DNA of 64,000 nt from Klebsormidium nitens (GCA_000708835.1 DF237444.1:1-64000), one strand, 5' to 3'. Numbered from the stretch's first letter, positions 52,101 to 62,407 are shown. A program made the numbers and translations. The notes: generated by a model not told the origin, from the letters alone.

Positions 52101-53491
52101 TGATGCATTTGGTGTGTTTGTGGACCTATTAGGGGCAGCCTTTCAAGCATACAGCCGACGCACCTTGGCTGCAAAAAACATTGTGGCTGACACGGTTGTA
52201 GCCCCATCCTTCTTCTGCGAGACTACATAGGCAATGTCTCGTCGAGCTGTCTTCTTGACGCTCAGGCCTCTGCGAGCCAAATCTTCAAGCTCAGCACCAG
52301 TCAAGCCTGTACCAGGGGACTGGACTTCAGGGGGATCCCTCTCAGGGCAGAATAAGAGGAGCATCGTGGATGTCTCGAACTGAAAGCTTCAAGATCAAGT
52401 TGGGTACTTCACCTTTATTGACGCATATCAGTCATGTCTGCAAGCAATGTAACTTTCATTGCCGCCTGGAAGAATTGGTCGCCTGACAAATAATTCTGAT
52501 GGCTGCAAGGAGGGCAACCTGAATTGACCACCAGTCTTGGAGGTTTGTAAGTTCAGTCCCTCACCCACATGCACCACACCTCGTATGATTGCTATGGTGG
52601 CAGGTTCTGCTCCATTAGCTCTTACAATATCCTCAACTTCTCGGGCCGTCTTCAGGTTCTGGGGAAACGGCATACCTGTATAAGCATTGTTCCGCCCCAC
52701 TTTCAGTTTATCAGAGCGATAAGCAGTGCAAGACAAGAGTAAGGTAGACGAATTCAACTCAATTTCGCTTGCTAATCTTCTGAGCTACAACAGATGAAGC
52801 TGCGGCCAGAAGGTGAAGCGTCAGCAGAGCAGAGCTTCCAATCACAGAAAGCTACTTTATGGAAAACTAGTTTTCTGGGGCAGGAGAAAAGGCCACCGTT
52901 CATTCCAACACATGTGTCTCATGCTTTTCGAAGGTGCTCAGCGAACTCCGTTGCGAGGTGTCAAACAGTCATGAAACCGCAATTGAAGCGCCTGTACTGA
53001 GGATAAGTGAGCGCCATAGGCAGCTTGTCTCAGTACATGGATAATTGATGATTTAGTATGTACTCCGCTTACCACCACCAGGCGCACGTTGGTTGAGTTT
53101 TCGAATCAGGTGGTGCTAGCTCTGCCGCTTTAGCAGTCCAAAACTACTTACCATGGCAAACAATCGTGGACTCCAGGGCCACCACTGGGCTGCCTGCCTC
53201 CAAAGCCCTCTTAACTGGATCACTGACCTGGTAGGCGCTTCCGTTACAAGCTTCCATGGCTATCTGTGCACTGACAGCCATCCTGCTGCCGCTACTTGTT
53301 TGTGTGTGGTTCAGGCCAAAAGCTGATAATCTGTCAGAATCAATGCTTGGAAGCAGCATTTGCTCGTGCTCTCCAGATTGACCCGAAGAAGCCCTCCCAG
53401 AACAGCAGGCTGCGTCTTGCAGAAGCTCATAGTCAGCACTCTGTAGATGCCTGTGGAGCACCATCATTCTTTTCGCCCCAGGTGCAGCCAT
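49115..53491 (-). CDS. PUMY: Pseudouridine-5'-phosphate glycosidase (PsuG / IndA family, plant PUMY), peroxisomal
   Basis: Exons give [12 protein letters not shown]|[21 protein letters not shown]..|..[26 protein letters not shown]|[19 protein letters not shown]|[36 protein letters not shown]|ETQGV..EFPAFFT..|..[20 protein letters not shown]|[18 protein letters not shown]. Confidence 0.96.
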
Positions 53492-53861
53492 CCTGAACAG
53501 GGAAGATCAGCTCGAGCTGCGGCTCACACCTGCGAAATTTGAACGAAGTTGGCGCTGACCTGGCAGTGATTGTCTGAATCATAATGTGACACTGATTGCC
53601 CATCCTTCTGCAGACTGTCTTGGCATTGTTGACAGTCACTCTGACATTTACAGTGATGTTGACCCTTGAAAGTTGAAAGTCCTGTCACATTCATTGCATG
53701 GACTGTCTCGTCAAGAACAAGGGAGAAGGGCGCTTCATTTTGTGAGATGCCACCCGATTTCCAAGCCGCTGAGGACCAATGGCCAAGCCCTGAGTTCAGT
53801 GGCAGCAAGAGCAATCCCTTTCAAACAGCGGCGCTCGCTTGTGCTGAAAGGGCCTACAATC

Positions 53862-56800
53862 ATGTTACGGCGTCTGCCTTCAGGAGGGGGGGCAGACGAA
53901 GAAGCCATCTCTTGCCCCGCCTGCGTGCGCCTGGATGAGTATCAAGGGCCAATTCGTCTTGGGCGGCACACAAGTGCTGAGATAAGATGTTTGTCCACAA
54001 AAACCTCTGCAGAGCGAGAGGTCACCAACGCAGCAGTCTCAAGGTGGCATGCAGAGATAACGCGAACTGCTGGGGGAGATTATGTCATCAAGGACACATC
54101 AGCAAACGGGACGATGGTATGTAACTGGCTCACATGAGGTTGTTTACAAGATAGTGAAGGTGATTGAGAAGGCAGGCACAGAATGCACTTCTCAATGGTT
54201 TAGTGCTTCCTGTGGAAATGTTGCAATGCACTGCATCATGAAGCTTCTTTGAATGCCTGTTGGGTGGTGTGAACAGGACAGGCCTCAGACAATTGACTTT
54301 TTGATGCACTGCTCGTACAGGTCAACGGTCATAAGCTTGTTGGTACACACACTCTCGCTGAAGGAGACGTCATCATTCTTGGTAGGTCTGCACACTAATC
54401 TGACAACATCATGCAAGCTCCCCAAGTGTCGTGTGCTTCTTCTTTTCAAGTGCACCCCATCTTTTTGGTATTGGCACCGCCTATCTTATCTTGAAGAGCA
54501 TCTTGTGCTGCAAATATGCCTTGCCCAATTGGCCGCAGCCTGTAACTAGCAACGCACCTCGACTGATTCAGGGGTTGATGGACCCCAGCTCTGAGCTTCC
54601 ACCTCTGGCTGAAGGTGACCAAATCTCTTTTGCTGCACAGGGATGCCAACATACAAAGCTACACCCCACTTGGAGACTAGCACCGAAGTCACCAACCCTT
54701 TCCGTTTTGAATTCTCTGTCGACCAAGGACGTCCTGTTGGACTCTCTGAGGCCCAACCTGCTGCTCCGTTAGTTCCCCCTGGTGTGCCTCAATTGGACAA
54801 ACAGAGTCATGCTGCACAGCCCCCGGGCTGCAGTCTCTTGTCGCCACCAGCGCCCCTTGAGAAACCCTTGGGCGCAAGCCTTCGATCGGCTGAGGAACGG
54901 CTTCCTAGAGTAGACCTAGCCGGAGTTAATCCAACGCTTGACCGTATAGACCGTGTACAAAAACCATCAGAGGACACTGCGCAGTTGCAGGACGGGGATG
55001 CAAGTAGACCGGATTCAACAGCCAACTTAGTCAAGCCACGTCACCCTGCTGACCGCAATACCGGTGGAGAGTCCCGCAGAGGCAGGAGGCTGGTGAGGAT
55101 CCACGGAGACCGGCAGGGCAATGGAAACGAGTTCGTTGACTTGTCTGACCTCCCAGAAGTGGAGCTGCCTGATGCTGGTAGAGGGGCAGGCGGGGCACGC
55201 AGGCAAAGATTAGAAGATCAGACTGAAGCCGCCAGGACAGGAGACGGTATTGGGCATGCGCTTAACACAGAACAGGCAGGGCAAGATAGGGAGAGTGGAC
55301 GTCAACAAGCAGACACTGCGGAAGGGCTTGGCCGGGTTGACGAGGGGCGAGAGCGCGTGCGGCAGCGGCTGATGGAGGTGGTGCGGGCGAAAGCTCGCGC
55401 AGACGAGCGGCAGAGCCCCCTCAAGAGGCGCAGCCCGGACTCCCCGTCTACGGGCGTATCACGGATGGCAAAGCTTTTGAAACCAGGGACAGCCTCCCGG
55501 ACTGCCGCGCCGGGCACGCCACTCAGCTTAGCGGACGACTGCCCACTTTTGGAGGTGCCGGAAGTAGGGGACGGGAGGGGGGGCGCTGTGCGGACCCGTG
55601 GCCTGGGGCCCCAATCCGCAGGCAGTGCTCCTAACCCGGGGCAGAGCTTGGTGATTGAGGTCCCTGCGAGTATGGATCCCCCAGCGAACCAGGATGCGGA
55701 TGTGCCTGATGGTCTGATTGTGGATCCTCCGGGAGAGGCGTCCGCGCCGAGCGTGCCTGTGGAACCACCGCAAGCCCCTCCCACTGCCACGGAAGACTCA
55801 GGTAGGGGCGCTAGTAAGAATGAGAGCTGACCTGCTATTTCCGAGTACTGCTTCATGACCAAGAAACGCTTCTGCCATGGAAGAGTCGGCATATCTATCT
55901 TTACGCTGTTCGATGGTCACAAAACTTTCTTTGTTTGGTTGAGGTTAAGCATCCGATAGGGTTTGTGCACAAAGCTTGCTGGGCCTTTCCATCTGAGATT
56001 CCGTACAGTATGGCGCAAGAGCATTGGCACGATCCTCATACCCTCTCCCAATTGACTCTCTGCTTAGTCTGAATATTGTGGGTTCGAACTATGGGCTGGC
56101 TACTTTTGAACATCGTTTCAAACTGTCACGCTGGGTTCCAAGAGCCTGGGCAGGGCACGAGAATCAGAAAGGGGTGACCAAATCAATTCAGGAGCTTCAC
56201 CAGGAAAGAGTGTGACCAGCACGACTTAGCTTCGCTTCATCTTCCGTCATGTCGACCTGGTAGTGGTGGGTCGTGCGCTCCAATTTCAACAAGAGAACGT
56301 CTCAAACTACGATGACTGTCGTTGACGTGTGAATGACGTGCAAAGGCCAATCGAAGCGTCCGCTGCCTACTTCCAAACAAGAGCCAAGTGCCCCGATCGG
56401 TAGCCACACCAAGCTGGTTCGTCTTCTGATCGGAACTGACGCAGATACCGTTCTTCTTGCAGCCAAGCAGAGCGCGGAGGCGGAGGTGCTGGAGATGCTG
56501 GGCGAGGAGATGCAGTGCGTCATCTGCCAGAGCTTCCTGTGCGCGGCGCACGCGCTGCCGTGCTCGCACACCTTCTGCGGGGACTGCCTCGTCCAGTGGC
56601 TCAGCAAGAAGCCGCACTGCCCCACGTGCCGCCAGCCGACCGGGGGGGCCAACCCGACGCCGATTCATAACATTGACAGCATGATCGAACGGGCCGCCAG
56701 TGTAAGTGACGCATGCAGTGTAATTGAGTTTTCCGTTTTTAGGCACCGATGGCGCCTACCCGCTGAGTCTGCAGTGATGTTCCTGAATACTGACAGGCAA

Positions 56801-58952
56801 ACCAGCTTGACGACAATCCGCTGTTGGACATCTTACATGGCTTCTTGGCCAGTTTTATATTCGACCCTAAGAGGTAATCGATGTATGAAAGTACGGCCCA
56901 ACCCCTTCAAAGCTGGGGTGCTCCACCCGTTCCTTGTCTTCATAGATCCAGAATTGACAAGGAATCGAACTCCTTTACACCTCGCAGCAGTTGCCTCTTT
57001 GAAGCTAACACCGTCAAAGACGAAGCTCGCGGGTCTCACGCGCTCCTCATGTTGACCTGCCTGCAGAGGTGCATGTCTGCCGAGGAGAAGGCCGAGTTTG
57101 ACCGGCGGAAAGGCGTGTTCAAGACGAGCAAGAAGCTGAAGCCCGCCCCCGCCACTGCCGCTCCCGCACGGGCCCGGGCAGCCCGAACGACCCCGGGACA
57201 CCTGCTGCACGTCTTCCGAAGCGGTAAGGCCCGCCACCGAGAGTAGAAAGAGTACCGGGCCTCGGGCCCGGGGGACATTTGCGTCCTTGTGGCTCGAATT
57301 TTGGCCAAATACATCGCTTATCCGCTGGACTTCTTTGTGCATACTTGAGAGGCTCGATTGAACGTGCGAGCACTTCATGTGACAAGCGCACGGACTTCCC
57401 GCCAATCCCGAATTGCTCAGGTGTCTCGTGCCTAAGAGCTTCCTTTCTCGGCGTCTGATACACCGATCTCAGAAAGGCCGGTGAGGTTCTACTCGACGAG
57501 AGTTGGAGGATCATACGTCATGATCGTCGGACCGTCCCGTCTGCCTTCAGCAAGTGGCGGAATGCTTCTGATTTCGAGGTCTTCCTGCTCTAGAATCATT
57601 TTCCCCCCCTGAAATCAATTCGCTGGCCGAGACTTATCTCTAGACGACAAGTCAACATCTCGTTCCGGCTAACCCCGTTGGGGTTTCTGCCTGTCCAGGT
57701 ACCCTCCAGGCCGTGTCTGCACGTCTTGAGGAGGCCATGAGCGGGATGTCGGACGGAAGAGCGAGGGACCTGATGCGCAATCGGCCCCGCCTGGTGACGG
57801 AGACTGCTCGCCGTGAGTGCCTGTCAGATCGAATTCAGTCCTACGGCTTGCAGTGCATATCATGTCGGTCTTGTGCAATTGCTTAGCAGGAGAAGCCTCG
57901 GGCATTATTCCCTGCGAAAGCCCATCCTGAAGAAGGGGCCGCTATTCGACAAAGCTTTATGCGACTAGGATTTAAACCGCTGCTTATCCCTGAAGCCGGT
58001 CATTGACTAAGCATCCAATGCCGCACGAGCACCGGTGAATCGCTTCTCCTCACCTTCCTCTACAGGCACGTCAATATTGGTCCCCAACAATGCAAGATAT
58101 CCAAATGCATTATGGAAGCGAGGTCCTTTCACGCTCTCTCATCACTCGCTTGTCCTAGTACGGCTGCTTGCGAGACTGTTTTTAACAGGTACAAATATCA
58201 TGTAACCCTTACACAAAACGTCCGCTGATCAAGCGCTGTTGGTCTTATTAAAGGCGGTCCTCCTGCGTCTGGCCCAGCGGCACCCCCCAATCAGCCTCCG
58301 GGCGCTCCGGGCGCCCCGGCCACAACGCGCGGCACCTTCGGGCGGCCGTATATCATCGACATCCCCACGACGGCCACCACCGTCTGTGCCGTCTGCAACC
58401 AGGCCATAGGAATTGGCCGCTTCCGCCTCACTGATGCGGTGAGAGCCACAGACCGGGCCTCGTCATACAGCGGGCTCTCGACTCCGTTTAGTCGATGTCT
58501 TTACACGGGTACATGGGAATCGGGTTCCGCTGTCCACAGCTTATCCGACGACAACTCTTGCTTCTGACGTGTCATAAAGTGTCATTGCATAGCACTGCCG
58601 TAGACGATGTCGAGTCTTCGTTTGCCCGTGCTTTGGAATCTGCGCAGAAGGAATGGTGTTATTTACAATTCCTCCTCTCATTCCGTCTGCTTATAAGAGC
58701 CACTTCTGACCTGCGCAGTATGGGGACAGTGGTCAGACATACCACCTGGGCTGCCTCAGCGCCCGCGGCATGATCCAGCCGTATCAGATTGCGGGCATGG
58801 AGGACCTGCCCCCCGCGGCCCAGGCACGGGCGCGGACGATCGTAAGAGAGCCCGGAGGCGTCTTTATCCGATCACCGAGGTCAGACGATCAGGCGCCGCA
58901 AGAGGTCGGAGAACCAGGCCCCGCATTTCCAGGGGTTCCCCGTCGCCTGTAG
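53862..58952 (+). CDS. FHA + C3HC4 RING E3 ubiquitin ligase (RNF8/CHFR-like) with a C-terminal PARP-type zinc finger
   Basis: Phase-compatible exons 53862-54116, 54321-54381, ~54640-55801, 56463-56701, 57067-57223, 57699-57812, 58254-58438 and 58719-58952. FHA motifs: LGR, SRWH, SANGTM|VNG..LAEGDVIILG. RING: C-x2-C-x11-C-x-H-x2-C-x2-C-x10-C-x2-C. Zinc finger: C-x2-C-x22-H-x2-C. The true start may lie upstream. Confidence 0.82.
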
Positions 58953-59371
58953 CTAATGTTCCAAGTATCAAAATGTACATATCTGGGACTCGACTCGCAA
59001 CAAGAGTACAGGAAAGAGAATATCCGAGTGGACATGTTCTCACGAAGAACGTGATGAGCACTGTTCTAGAGCAGAGCGCCAAGGTGGCATCGAATGGCAG
59101 ATTCTTACTGATGGAGTATTGAGTGAAGCCTTCGGCTGCACTCGCAAAATCGCAACAGATTTGACTCTTGGTGTTGTGTCAACTTTGCGAGTATGATGTT
59201 TAAACCTGCGTGCGTGAAGGCCCATACTTACCGCGTATTGAGCACCATGTTCAACGATGCTTCAGCCCTGAATTGAAACAGAAGTATACTAGCTCGGCCG
59301 CCACCCGATGTTCTGCCCAGCCCTCCGTATAATCAAAGCCGCTTAAAGTAGGTCGTTAATATATTAACGTG

Positions 59372-60140
59372 CACTACACAAGCTACCTATGGTGGGTGTC
59401 GGCGGTCTCGATCGCGCGACGGTACCGTCACCAAATTGACTCACCGGTGTTACGCGTCGCGACATTTCATGTACACGGTACTGACGACCGTACTCGGCCG
59501 TACTTTAGAATCCGGTCCGAGTTCATGAATTGGAAATTGTCTGACATGTCGACGAACGGTAAACTCCGGTATATTCGGCGGTACAGTACCGCGCAAGTCT
59601 GCGCGTCCGCAAATTTGAAATTTCATGGTGTTTGTCGGAAGTTCCGACTCGAACCACCTGAGGGTACCGCGGTACTTAACTTGAAAGAGGAGTGCAGGAA
59701 GTTGAAAGAAGAGTGTAGGAAAAGGCGCATTTCAAGAGCAAGCAATGCCGGCCGACTTTGAGGCTTGTATGGTGCTTATTCCGATTTGTCCTCGACATTT
59801 CCTTATGTTGGGTCTTCAAACAAACCCTCAAGGTGCTCTCCCAACATTTTTCTTTGCTTGTCAGAGCTTTCTATGGGCTGCATAAGGCTCTTCTTTGTGT
59901 GCCAGTTTGATGCTCACACACAAGTGTAAAACATAACACTGTCTTTCACTCCTGTAACACTGACTTACGGCCGAGCAATATTGTCTGAGTACTTGTACCG
60001 CCCGAGTAACAGAAACCTGAGTTGCCGTGACGTGAACCGCCGGTATCACTGACGGAATTCGATACGCGGTATTACAATTTTGTGGCGGTCGGAGTCAAAA
60101 TTGACTCGGCCGGTACCCACCATAGGTAGCTTGTGTAGTG
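59372..60140. mobile_element. Non-autonomous CACTA (En/Spm)-like element, 769 bp
   Basis: Perfect 26-bp TIRs CACTACACAAGCTACCTATGGTGGGT (59372-59397 / 60115-60140) with CACTA...TAGTG termini. The 3-bp flanks are GTG / GTC (imperfect TSD). No transposase ORF. Confidence 0.82.
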
Positions 60141-60602: not shown

Positions 60603-62068
60603 CTAAGCACTCTTCTTGCCTTCGACTTGAGCAAACTTGCTGTCGACTCTCCCGAGGAGGGATCGAAGCTTGTCATTTTCTTCCAACAATCTGTCATATT
60701 CCTGAGCCACCCCGTCTGCTTGTCGTTTTAGCGCCTCAGCATTCTTCACTGCTGTCTCCGTGATCTGCTTATCTTTGCGACGATCTTCTAACTCCTGCTG
60801 CAGAGTGGTCACGGTCTCTCGGAGGATGTCCGTCTGTAAGTGTCGAATGTCCAATCAGATAGGAAGGCATGGCTTGTGGTGACCCTTTGGCCTGATTAGA
60901 CGATCTGTACATACTGAAGCATTCCAAAAGGGCCAAAGGTTTGAGGTTAAGGGACTCAAAGTTGGGTAGAAGCAAGCCAGTAGAATACAAGTCTGCCTGT
61001 AATGAAGCAGTACTCTCTGGACATGAGGCGGACGCTGCCCACATCAACCTTGTCAAAATTGGATTCTACATTTCAATTGAATATACAGCGTGCAAGTTTT
61101 AGCTTAAACATGTCAGCTGCACAGCAGACAACCATCCACGACGACAATTTAATGATTTGGAGCGCACCTGCTGGCGCAACTCCTTGACTTTGGCCTCTTC
61201 TGCTGCCAGTTTTGCACTGTAGTCCACCTGGCCGGAGGACTTTTCGTGCAGCTTCAAATACTCTGTTCCGGCATTCTTTGCTTGCCTTTGCAGAGCATCA
61301 TGGCTGACCCTCAGCTTGTCCCCCTCGGTTACAGCAGCATAAACTGCGTGATCAAGGAGCACCAGCAAGAGCGACGCACCTGCAGGCAAAGAAAGGAGTA
61401 CGCACATCAACCACCTTCCATCAGGAAGTTGCCCCAGTACCTAGGCGGTAGCGAGAAGGCAAGTGATTGCCAATGAAGCATTTTGCGCGACATGCCACTC
61501 CGTCTAAACAGAGCGCTGGGGCTCTTTGATTGGAAAACCAGTGCTTCGCAATGAGTCTGGCAATTCTCCAACGCATGGCAGCCCAACTATTCTTGCTGCA
61601 ATATATCAGACACACCCACTAATCTAAATGTGTGAATGACACAGGTTGAGAACCAGGAATCCTGTGAGCCTGATCCTGATCTCCTATTTGTATTCATTGG
61701 GGTGTACAGCTGGCATAGACTTTGTACCTAAGCATCATAAGCCCAGGTATGCTCCAGCTTGTCTTACCGGTTATGAATGCCTGCAGATATTCACTGTACA
61801 ATGCGCTTTCTGTACGCAGCGAGTCGCCAGTGTTGAGCGCTTCCGCTTTTGCTGCTTTTACAAGCAGCCCTTGTATGCTGGCAATTGATGAGAGCAGGAA
61901 CACAACGAGCGCTCCAAAGATTGTCCTGACGACCGCTGCCGCTCTGGGAATGTGAAAGAAACCGACTACAGCCAAACCCAGTCTTCTGACTGCCGGCACG
62001 GGGATGACTAGAAGGATGCTCACAACCACTTGGAGTGACAGGAGCACAATGGACGGGAGCAACAGCAT
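60603..62068 (-). CDS. BAP31: B-cell receptor-associated protein 29/31-like ER membrane protein
   Basis: Exons 62068-61768, 61379-61168 and 60833-60603 encode three hydrophobic segments, a coiled coil (ALQRQAKN; AEALKRQADGVAQEYDRLLEENDKLR) and a C-terminal KKSA dilysine ER-retrieval motif. Confidence 0.9.
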
Positions 62069-62407
62069 GATGGGCAACCTTGCACAACTCAGAGGTTGTG
62101 ATAGCCAGCCACACTTCCAACCTATCCCCTTCAGAAATGAGTTGTGCCCTTCAGAGTCAACGAGGAGCAAGCAGACTCAAGTAGGCACGAAGATGATTGC
62201 AATGCAAGAAGAAAACGCCACTAGCTTGCAAGCTCAAGCTGGGTGCGCCCAGGTAGCCAGCCACTCGCATCTGAATCTGCATCTACCTACTCATGTCATT
62301 GAACCCTAGGAACCCTAGAAACCATGGTGGTCCCCTTGCGTTTCAAGAAAGCACTTTCTTTGATCAAAAGTACTTGTTGGCAAATTTAAATCTTGGATTA
62401 CAAGTGT

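Follow-up and report, generated by a model that had tools for sequence, protein, structure and literature searches.

A streptophyte algal FHA-RING ubiquitin ligase with a divergent C-terminal PARP-type zinc finger, a candidate recruiter to DNA breaks

The FHA-RING ligases RNF8 and CHFR are brought to sites of DNA damage. In the usual description, RNF8 is guided to breaks by phospho-MDC1, and CHFR by the poly(ADP-ribose) that PARP1 makes once its own zinc fingers have located the break. Here we analysed a stretch of 64,000 nucleotides from Klebsormidium nitens (GCA_000708835.1 DF237444.1:1-64000, hereafter the window), in which positions 53,862 to 58,952 encode an 801-residue protein carrying an FHA domain, a RING and, at its C-terminus, a module with the features of a PARP-type zinc finger. 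With moderate confidence, we take it to be a single-chain RING E3 of the FHA-RING (RNF8/Dma/CHFR) kind, with a divergent C-terminal PARP-type finger, acting as a two-input recruiter to breaks. A preliminary description of the locus had proposed that one protein could read phosphothreonine, bind breaks and ubiquitylate. The occurrence of the three domains in one transcribed protein supports this proposal, the break-sensing part of which we infer from the domain family of the finger.

The RING exon alone was searched against a library of 1.84 billion representative proteins. The top match (P0001; GAQ89187.1, UniProt A0A1Y1IKH9) was an 801-residue protein of K. nitens, a streptophyte alga, with 100% identity over the RING exon, and it contains the translation of every exon. 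The protein is therefore already in the databases, where it is under-annotated: its stored Pfam annotation lists FHA and RING families only, zf-PARP having been missed, and its names are "FHA domain containing protein" at NCBI and "E3 ubiquitin-protein ligase CHFR" in UniRef. The order first read from the DNA, an FHA domain followed by a linker of about 390 residues and a C3HC4 RING, was confirmed, both domains scoring above their Pfam cut-offs. The FHA domain gave 48.7 bits over residues 32-106 (E 1.1e-12, cut-off 20.7), 28.7 bits on exon 1 alone, and has the canonical phosphothreonine-binding residues (G34-R35, S60-R61-x-H63, N82-G83-T84 and G100-D101). Compared with the Protein Data Bank (PDB), it returned weak bacterial and plant FHA matches only, and no RNF8 or CHFR FHA at E below 0.01. 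No Pfam match was found for the linker (exon 3, about 387-390 residues) at E up to 10, and it is not conserved relative to Chlorokybus or RNF8. All eight RING ligands are present (C511, C514, C526, H528, C531, C534, C545 and C548), with R549 after the last Cys. Over residues 510-551 of P0001 the scores were 33.9 bits for zf-RING_2, 32.6 for zf-C3HC4_3 and 32.4 for zf-C3HC4_2, all above the cut-offs, and the RING exon alone reached 39.6 (zf-RING_2) and 38.5 bits (zf-C3HC4_3).

The identity of the C-terminal module was examined with a family profile and a predicted fold. The putative zinc ligands are C707-x2-C710-x22-H733-x2-C736, and the last intron falls between A724 and Y725. Profile A1 was made of 15 C-terminal modules from related RING proteins; the four ligands are invariant in 15 of the 15 aligned modules, which come from distant lineages. 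When A1 was compared with the PDB, it matched PARP1 Zn1 (4e-15), PARP1 Zn2 (2e-9) and the finger of DNA ligase III (Lig3; 2e-8), and nothing else below E 0.1. The Klebsormidium module itself scored 27.9 bits in a leave-one-out family profile, and 33.4 bits with a profile of the 13 relatives left after removal of the streptophyte algae (Klebsormidium and Chlorokybus); none of 2000 shuffles with fixed ligands reached 33.4 bits, the best being at 15.5. An AlphaFold model computed on the A1 alignment had a pLDDT of 88.1 and a pTM of 0.77. With Foldseek, its first 28 PDB matches were all PARP1 Zn1/Zn2 or Lig3 fingers (TM 0.61-0.74, probability 1.00), and the next ones, RINGs and C1 domains, had TM values of 0.35-0.44. 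The zf-PARP assignment of the preliminary description thus survived the family-profile PDB search, the leave-out scoring and the predicted-fold comparison, and these support the view that the module is a divergent PARP-type zinc finger. With phmmer, exons 7 and 8 matched PDB sequences at chance level only, and ESM Atlas features of exon 8 gave nothing usable, with scores of 0.86 or less.

Equivalences with PARP1 residues were obtained by chaining two profile alignments. By this means R720 aligns with PARP1 R34, and Y725 with PARP1 F44. An Arg at the R34 position is kept in 9 of the 15 modules, the Klebsormidium copy included. The motif G..L.P.DQ.RVR, in the C-terminal part, is the majority consensus of the modules, which the Klebsormidium copy matches in part. 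The module therefore resembles PARP1 Zn1/Zn2 and the Lig3 finger in its Cys-x2-Cys ... His-x2-Cys pattern, in the aligned R34 and F44 positions, in the C-terminal helix motif and in a predicted fold with a TM of about 0.7 to DNA-bound fingers. It differs in its setting, being a single finger at the C-terminal end of a ligase and not an N-terminal part of a polymerase or DNA ligase.

The same layout was found in other organisms. Among the 150 best RING matches, 39 have an FHA domain, 15 have the C-terminal Cys-x2-Cys ... His-x2-Cys module, and at least 10 combine FHA, RING and zf-PARP. Four of the 15 finger-bearing proteins (P0040, P0041, P0043 and P0073) pass the Pfam zf-PARP cut-off, with 39.7-52.1 bits at the same C-terminal position, and three of these four also have an FHA domain; zf-PARP matches below the cut-off were seen at the same place in P0006, P0013, P0050, P0065, P0079, P0088, P0129 and P0140. 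Finger-bearing proteins come from streptophyte algae (Klebsormidium, Chlorokybus), chlorophytes (Symbiochloris, [Myrmecia] bisecta, Micractinium and a relative of Chlorella variabilis) and the choanoflagellate Salpingoeca punica, and several clusters come from environmental assemblies. For one environmental member (L001 3001-4425), the gene lacks introns and lies on a contig of 288 kb, and the stored Pfam annotation already lists FHA, RING and zf-PARP. A protein of the sea anemone Nematostella has the RING and the finger with no FHA match; its finger was called by our own family profile only, and had no Pfam zf-PARP match at E up to 0.01. We conclude that a conserved subfamily with the FHA-RING-finger layout exists in green algae, a choanoflagellate and uncultured eukaryotes. 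Atlas features, used as leads only, pointed to two Chlorophyta-rich clusters of FHA-RING proteins. A word-index protein search with a 12-protein family alignment was dominated by generic RING words, yielding nothing beyond the first sequence and two TRIM-like proteins of lizards; a search of this type with the P0001 RING region as query recovered only P0001 itself. As a side observation, the environmental sequences P0040, P0041, P0043, P0073 and L001 3001-4425 form a clade supported at 100/99 in the RING tree described below, and have the most PARP1-like fingers, including a Pro-Met/Leu/Ile-Phe loop at the base-stacking position.

If the protein works as its domains suggest, the FHA would use its phosphothreonine-contact residues to bind a phosphorylated scaffold of the damage response or the cell cycle, while the finger would bind nicks or DNA ends directly, using its four zinc ligands, R720 as a "backbone grip" and the aromatic Y725 for "base-stacking". 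The RING, in which all eight ligands and the Arg that follows the final Cys are present, would recruit a charged E2, so that nearby chromatin or repair proteins become ubiquitylated. Such a ligase could reach breaks without poly(ADP-ribose), the mark recognised by the PBZ motif of CHFR, and, unlike RNF8, may not rely solely on a phospho-scaffold. It would then be a coincidence detector at DNA breaks, independent of the PARP product. More speculatively, the RING might dimerise via its flanking helix, as in RNF8, bringing two fingers together in the manner of PARP1 Zn1 and Zn2.

Several observations weigh against this reading. Pfam zf-PARP (PF00645) aligned with P0001 over profile positions 7-85 of 87, at 13.8 bits (E 0.1), below the cut-off of 39.3. 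Exons 7 and 8 taken singly gave no Pfam zf-PARP match and no PARP structure match; for Pfam, this is because the last intron splits the domain. The AlphaFold model of the finger made from the single sequence was uninformative (pLDDT 42.5), which means that the good model leans on the alignment of relatives. The Klebsormidium copy is the most divergent finger seen in the family: T704 stands at the PARP1 R18 position, and the N-terminal EY..GR motif is absent, 'IDIPTTATTVC' replacing 'VEYAKSGRASC'. The two ligand pairs are separated by 22 residues, as first read, versus the usual 28-30, the loop being shorter across the region of the PARP1 base-stacking loop. Finally, PARP1 uses two such fingers and Lig3 pairs its finger with other DNA-binding parts, so that one finger may bind weakly.

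The main rival is a Dma1- or CHFR-like cell-cycle checkpoint E3 directed by its FHA only, with a shortened finger that does not recognise DNA breaks, being degenerate or repurposed to bind protein, RNA or poly(ADP-ribose), or to serve as a structural cap. We consider it unlikely. It would account for a finger far under the Pfam cut-off, with a loop six residues shorter and neither the R18-aligned residue nor the EY..GR motif; the chlorophyte copies, moreover, lack the Pro-Met/Leu-Phe-Gly loop common to the environmental clade and PARP1. However, a degenerate finger fits poorly with ligands invariant in all 15 modules, with the Arg at the R34 position in 9 of them, Klebsormidium included, and with a predicted fold that is that of DNA-bound PARP1 fingers. 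To our knowledge, all studied zf-PARP domains (PARP1, DNA ligase III and plant ZDP) bind DNA strand breaks. The orthologue in Chlorokybus, whose alignment with the Klebsormidium protein is collinear over the RING and all that follows (E 4e-34), has a short loop too (x23), and the short loop is therefore an old streptophyte-alga variant rather than decay in one genome. The function of fungal relatives favours the checkpoint alternative and is a further point against a repair role: fungal FHA-RING ligases work on septins and mitotic exit (PMC3637335), Dma1/2 serving mitotic control rather than repair.

The preliminary description called the protein RNF8-like. This holds only for the helices flanking the RING: together with both of these helices, the RING aligns with shark RNF8 (P0132/P0172) at 35% identity over 104 residues (E 2e-17). 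The best single solved RING match was human RNF8, at 50.6 bits, and the post-RING motif, of Leu/Val-Asp-x-x-Ile type, occurs in 63 of the 150 best RING matches. Features in common with RNF8/Dma are the N-terminal FHA, the long linker, the C3HC4 RING, the pre-RING helix, a post-RING helix with a Leu/Ile-Asp-x-x-Ile ... Ser-x-Glu-Glu ... Arg-Arg motif, and the absence of a poly-Cys region, the criterion of PMC3637335. Between FHA and RING, the part seen to align with RNF8 was the short pre-RING helix. The likeness does not extend to the position of the RING in a tree of RING plus flanks (44 sequences, without bona fide CHFR or fungal Dma), where a clade containing shark RNF8 (P0132), supported at 95/87, excludes P0001 and every finger-bearing protein, and where P0001 stands on the unresolved backbone. 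RNF8 also stops just past the RING helix, whereas the Klebsormidium protein is about 230 residues longer with zf-PARP at its end, and FHA similarity to RNF8 is weak (32% over 53 residues). We also noted that three FHA-RING proteins without a finger (P0018, P0033 and P0049), one of them from the stramenopile alga Chrysophaeum taylorii, adjoin P0001 in the RING tree; their branch is very long and weakly supported (79/95), and their placement is doubtful.

As for CHFR, the protein shares with it an FHA, a RING and then a C-terminal zinc module tied to PARP and the DNA-break pathway. An algal orthologue of CHFR proper, in which the Cys-rich region and PBZ were replaced by another damage-linked zinc finger, could thus be envisaged, and the UniRef name, the Atlas feature search, which sets the Chlorokybus orthologue beside clusters named CHFR family, and the link that CHFR too makes between FHA-RING and the PARP pathway all speak for it. 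We nevertheless regard it as improbable. The Klebsormidium protein has neither zf-CRD nor PBZ: at E up to 10 there was no zf-CRD (PF17979) match on P0001, and the part beyond the RING contains just four Cys, of which three are zf-PARP ligands, so that the initial reading of no CHFR-type Cys-rich tail was correct. Such a tail was found in none of the FHA- or finger-bearing proteins among the 150 best RING matches, which include shark RNF8. A poly-Cys C-terminal region is present in Chfr and absent from RNF8/Dma (PMC3637335), and by this criterion the Klebsormidium protein is not Chfr; membership of CHFR was ruled out on this ground, the lack of a Cys-rich domain. The UniRef name does not discriminate, since it is also given to Callorhinchus milii (shark) P0132/P0171/P0172, which NCBI calls RNF8, and it is common to the Klebsormidium, Trichoplax, Symbiochloris and Myrmecia proteins; this automatic name goes to FHA-RING proteins of any sort and does not denote CHFR orthology. 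In the Atlas, separate clusters with RING and zf-CRD in Streptophyta, and with FHA and zf-CRD in Haptophyta, again as leads only, point to a CHFR-type lineage apart from the Klebsormidium subfamily. Furthermore, the C-terminal module has the predicted fold of the PARP1 break-sensing finger, not that of the poly(ADP-ribose)-reading PBZ; what it detects would therefore be the lesion itself and not what PARP makes there.

The gene model (Table 1) was derived by reading positions 53600-59300 of the window. Its eight exons close in phase, giving 802 codons counting the stop. A search of sequencing runs found 20 runs with matches, from seven studies, and contigs from 4 runs of 4 studies were aligned to positions 53500-59400 (5,901 letters). 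All seven GT..AG joints were present in these RNA-derived contigs, including 57812/58254 and 58438/58719, the two junctions singled out in the preliminary description, which had added two short downstream exons (58254-58438 and 58719 onwards) joined in phase; contigs of all four runs carry both. Contigs X11 (4,420 bases) and X9 (2,877 bases) each have every joint, and X11 covers every exon, the short exon-2 piece being deduced from its two joints. The RNA label of the runs is a guess; all the same, a contig that omits seven GT..AG introns in phase implies a spliced transcript. The locus is an expressed gene of K. nitens. Joint-bearing contigs had depths of 64-203, and introns were seen only in separate contigs, at depths of 3-15. 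These low-depth contigs, from the same runs as the exons, cover 55868-56082, 56672-57033, 57197-57727, 57784-58283 and 58409-58726, and stem either from precursor RNA before splicing or from traces of genomic DNA; from about 56083 to 56454, intron 3 is nearly without contig cover. That an FHA-RING gene and an adjacent small zinc-finger gene were joined by wrong annotation or a read-through contig is ruled out by the RNA contigs: although the last two exons are short and lie behind three introns of 365-475 bases, ligase contigs also extend upstream into the neighbouring gene, and a single molecule is not provable from contigs, in four studies the in-phase GT..AG junctions stand on single contigs, with the same depth as elsewhere in the gene, and the collinear FHA-RING-finger order recurs in Chlorokybus and in intron-free genes elsewhere, such as L001 3001-4425.

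Table 1. Features of the FHA-RING-zf-PARP ligase gene, in coordinates of the window
Feature	Position	Strand	Basis
Coding region of the 801-residue FHA-RING-zf-PARP ligase	53862..58952	+	RNA-derived contigs; match to P0001
Exons 1-8 (stop included)	53862-54116, 54321-54381, 54641-55801, 56463-56701, 57067-57223, 57699-57812, 58254-58438, 58719-58952	+	
5' leader	53638..53861	+	Start of contig X9 at 53638
FHA domain, residues about 26-110, spanning introns 1 and 2	53937..54652	+	Pfam FHA
Low-complexity linker, residues about 111-493	54653..55801	+	No family
Pre-RING helix, C3HC4 RING, start of post-RING helix	56465..56701	+	Pfam RING models
Post-RING helix continued (motif MSAEEKAEFDRRK) and basic stretch	57067..57223	+	Aligns with RNF8 and the Chlorokybus orthologue
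Exon 6, 38-codon spacer	57699..57812	+	Joints 57223/57699 and 57812/58254; no Pfam match
Divergent PARP-type zinc finger (supported), residues 695-768, split by intron 58439-58718	58349..58850	+	Family profile, predicted fold
3' untranslated region	58953..59224	+	Contig ends

The 5' leader has upstream ATGs at 53656, 53698 and 53747, as read from the DNA, and an in-frame stop at 53670-53672. Within positions 53656-53938, the open reading frame from the third of these ATGs (53747) overlaps the main start codon at 53862. The upstream ATGs could serve translational control; alternatively, the main transcription start could lie downstream of the start of contig X9 at 53638. At the other end, contig X1 shows a poly(A) end after 59108 (a loose end of 26 A), and other contigs extend to 59189-59224. 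An extra exon beyond the GTAAGA donor at 58842 was ruled out, because contigs are unspliced from 58718 through to the poly(A) site.

Two genes flank the ligase. The first exon of the head-to-head neighbour (53144-53491, - strand) matched Indigoidine synthase A-like / pseudouridine-5'-phosphate glycosidase, with 21.8 bits over 22 residues. In 3 of the 4 runs, the ligase contig extended past 53500 without a break, reaching about 1,400 bases farther upstream; either the 5' ends of the two genes overlap, or the assembler merged both. The downstream neighbour (60603-62170, - strand) matched Bap31_Bap29_C (41.1 bits, 60606-60854) and, weakly, the transmembrane part of Bap31 (61697-62170), and looks, from these matches, like a Bap31/Bap29-type membrane protein of the endoplasmic reticulum.

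The preliminary description did not recognise the architecture. No description of FHA-RING-zf-PARP proteins was found in the full-text literature searched, which is weak evidence as most subscription journals lay outside the search; the layout is not, however, peculiar to Klebsormidium, as seen above from the at least 10 instances. RING and zf-PARP are both named among the domains in a list of Trypanosoma cruzi RING E3s (PMC5976635) and in a figure legend on Toxoplasma SNF2-type proteins (PMC12215852), but these surveys offer lists or legends only, and no FHA-RING-zf-PARP protein is described or studied in them. A survey of plant RING ligases nowhere mentions FHA, PARP, CHFR or RNF8. As far as we found, the subfamily is a conserved variant of FHA-RING ligases that has gone undescribed.

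The green lineage is generally described as lacking clear RNF8 orthologues. Tentatively, FHA-RING-zf-PARP proteins might represent an old third branch of FHA-RING ligases, one that detects breaks directly and ubiquitylates chromatin, without PARP or a phospho-scaffold as intermediary. Such a branch would predate the plant-animal split, and would have persisted in green algae, choanoflagellates and cnidarians while disappearing from land plants and bilaterians. The family is readily testable, its domains being small and soluble and its orthologues present in culturable algae. If the proposed function is true, an FHA-RING ligase carrying a PARP-type finger would connect DNA breaks with ubiquitin in a third and more direct way, and would give a handle on the start of DNA-damage ubiquitin signalling in the green lineage.

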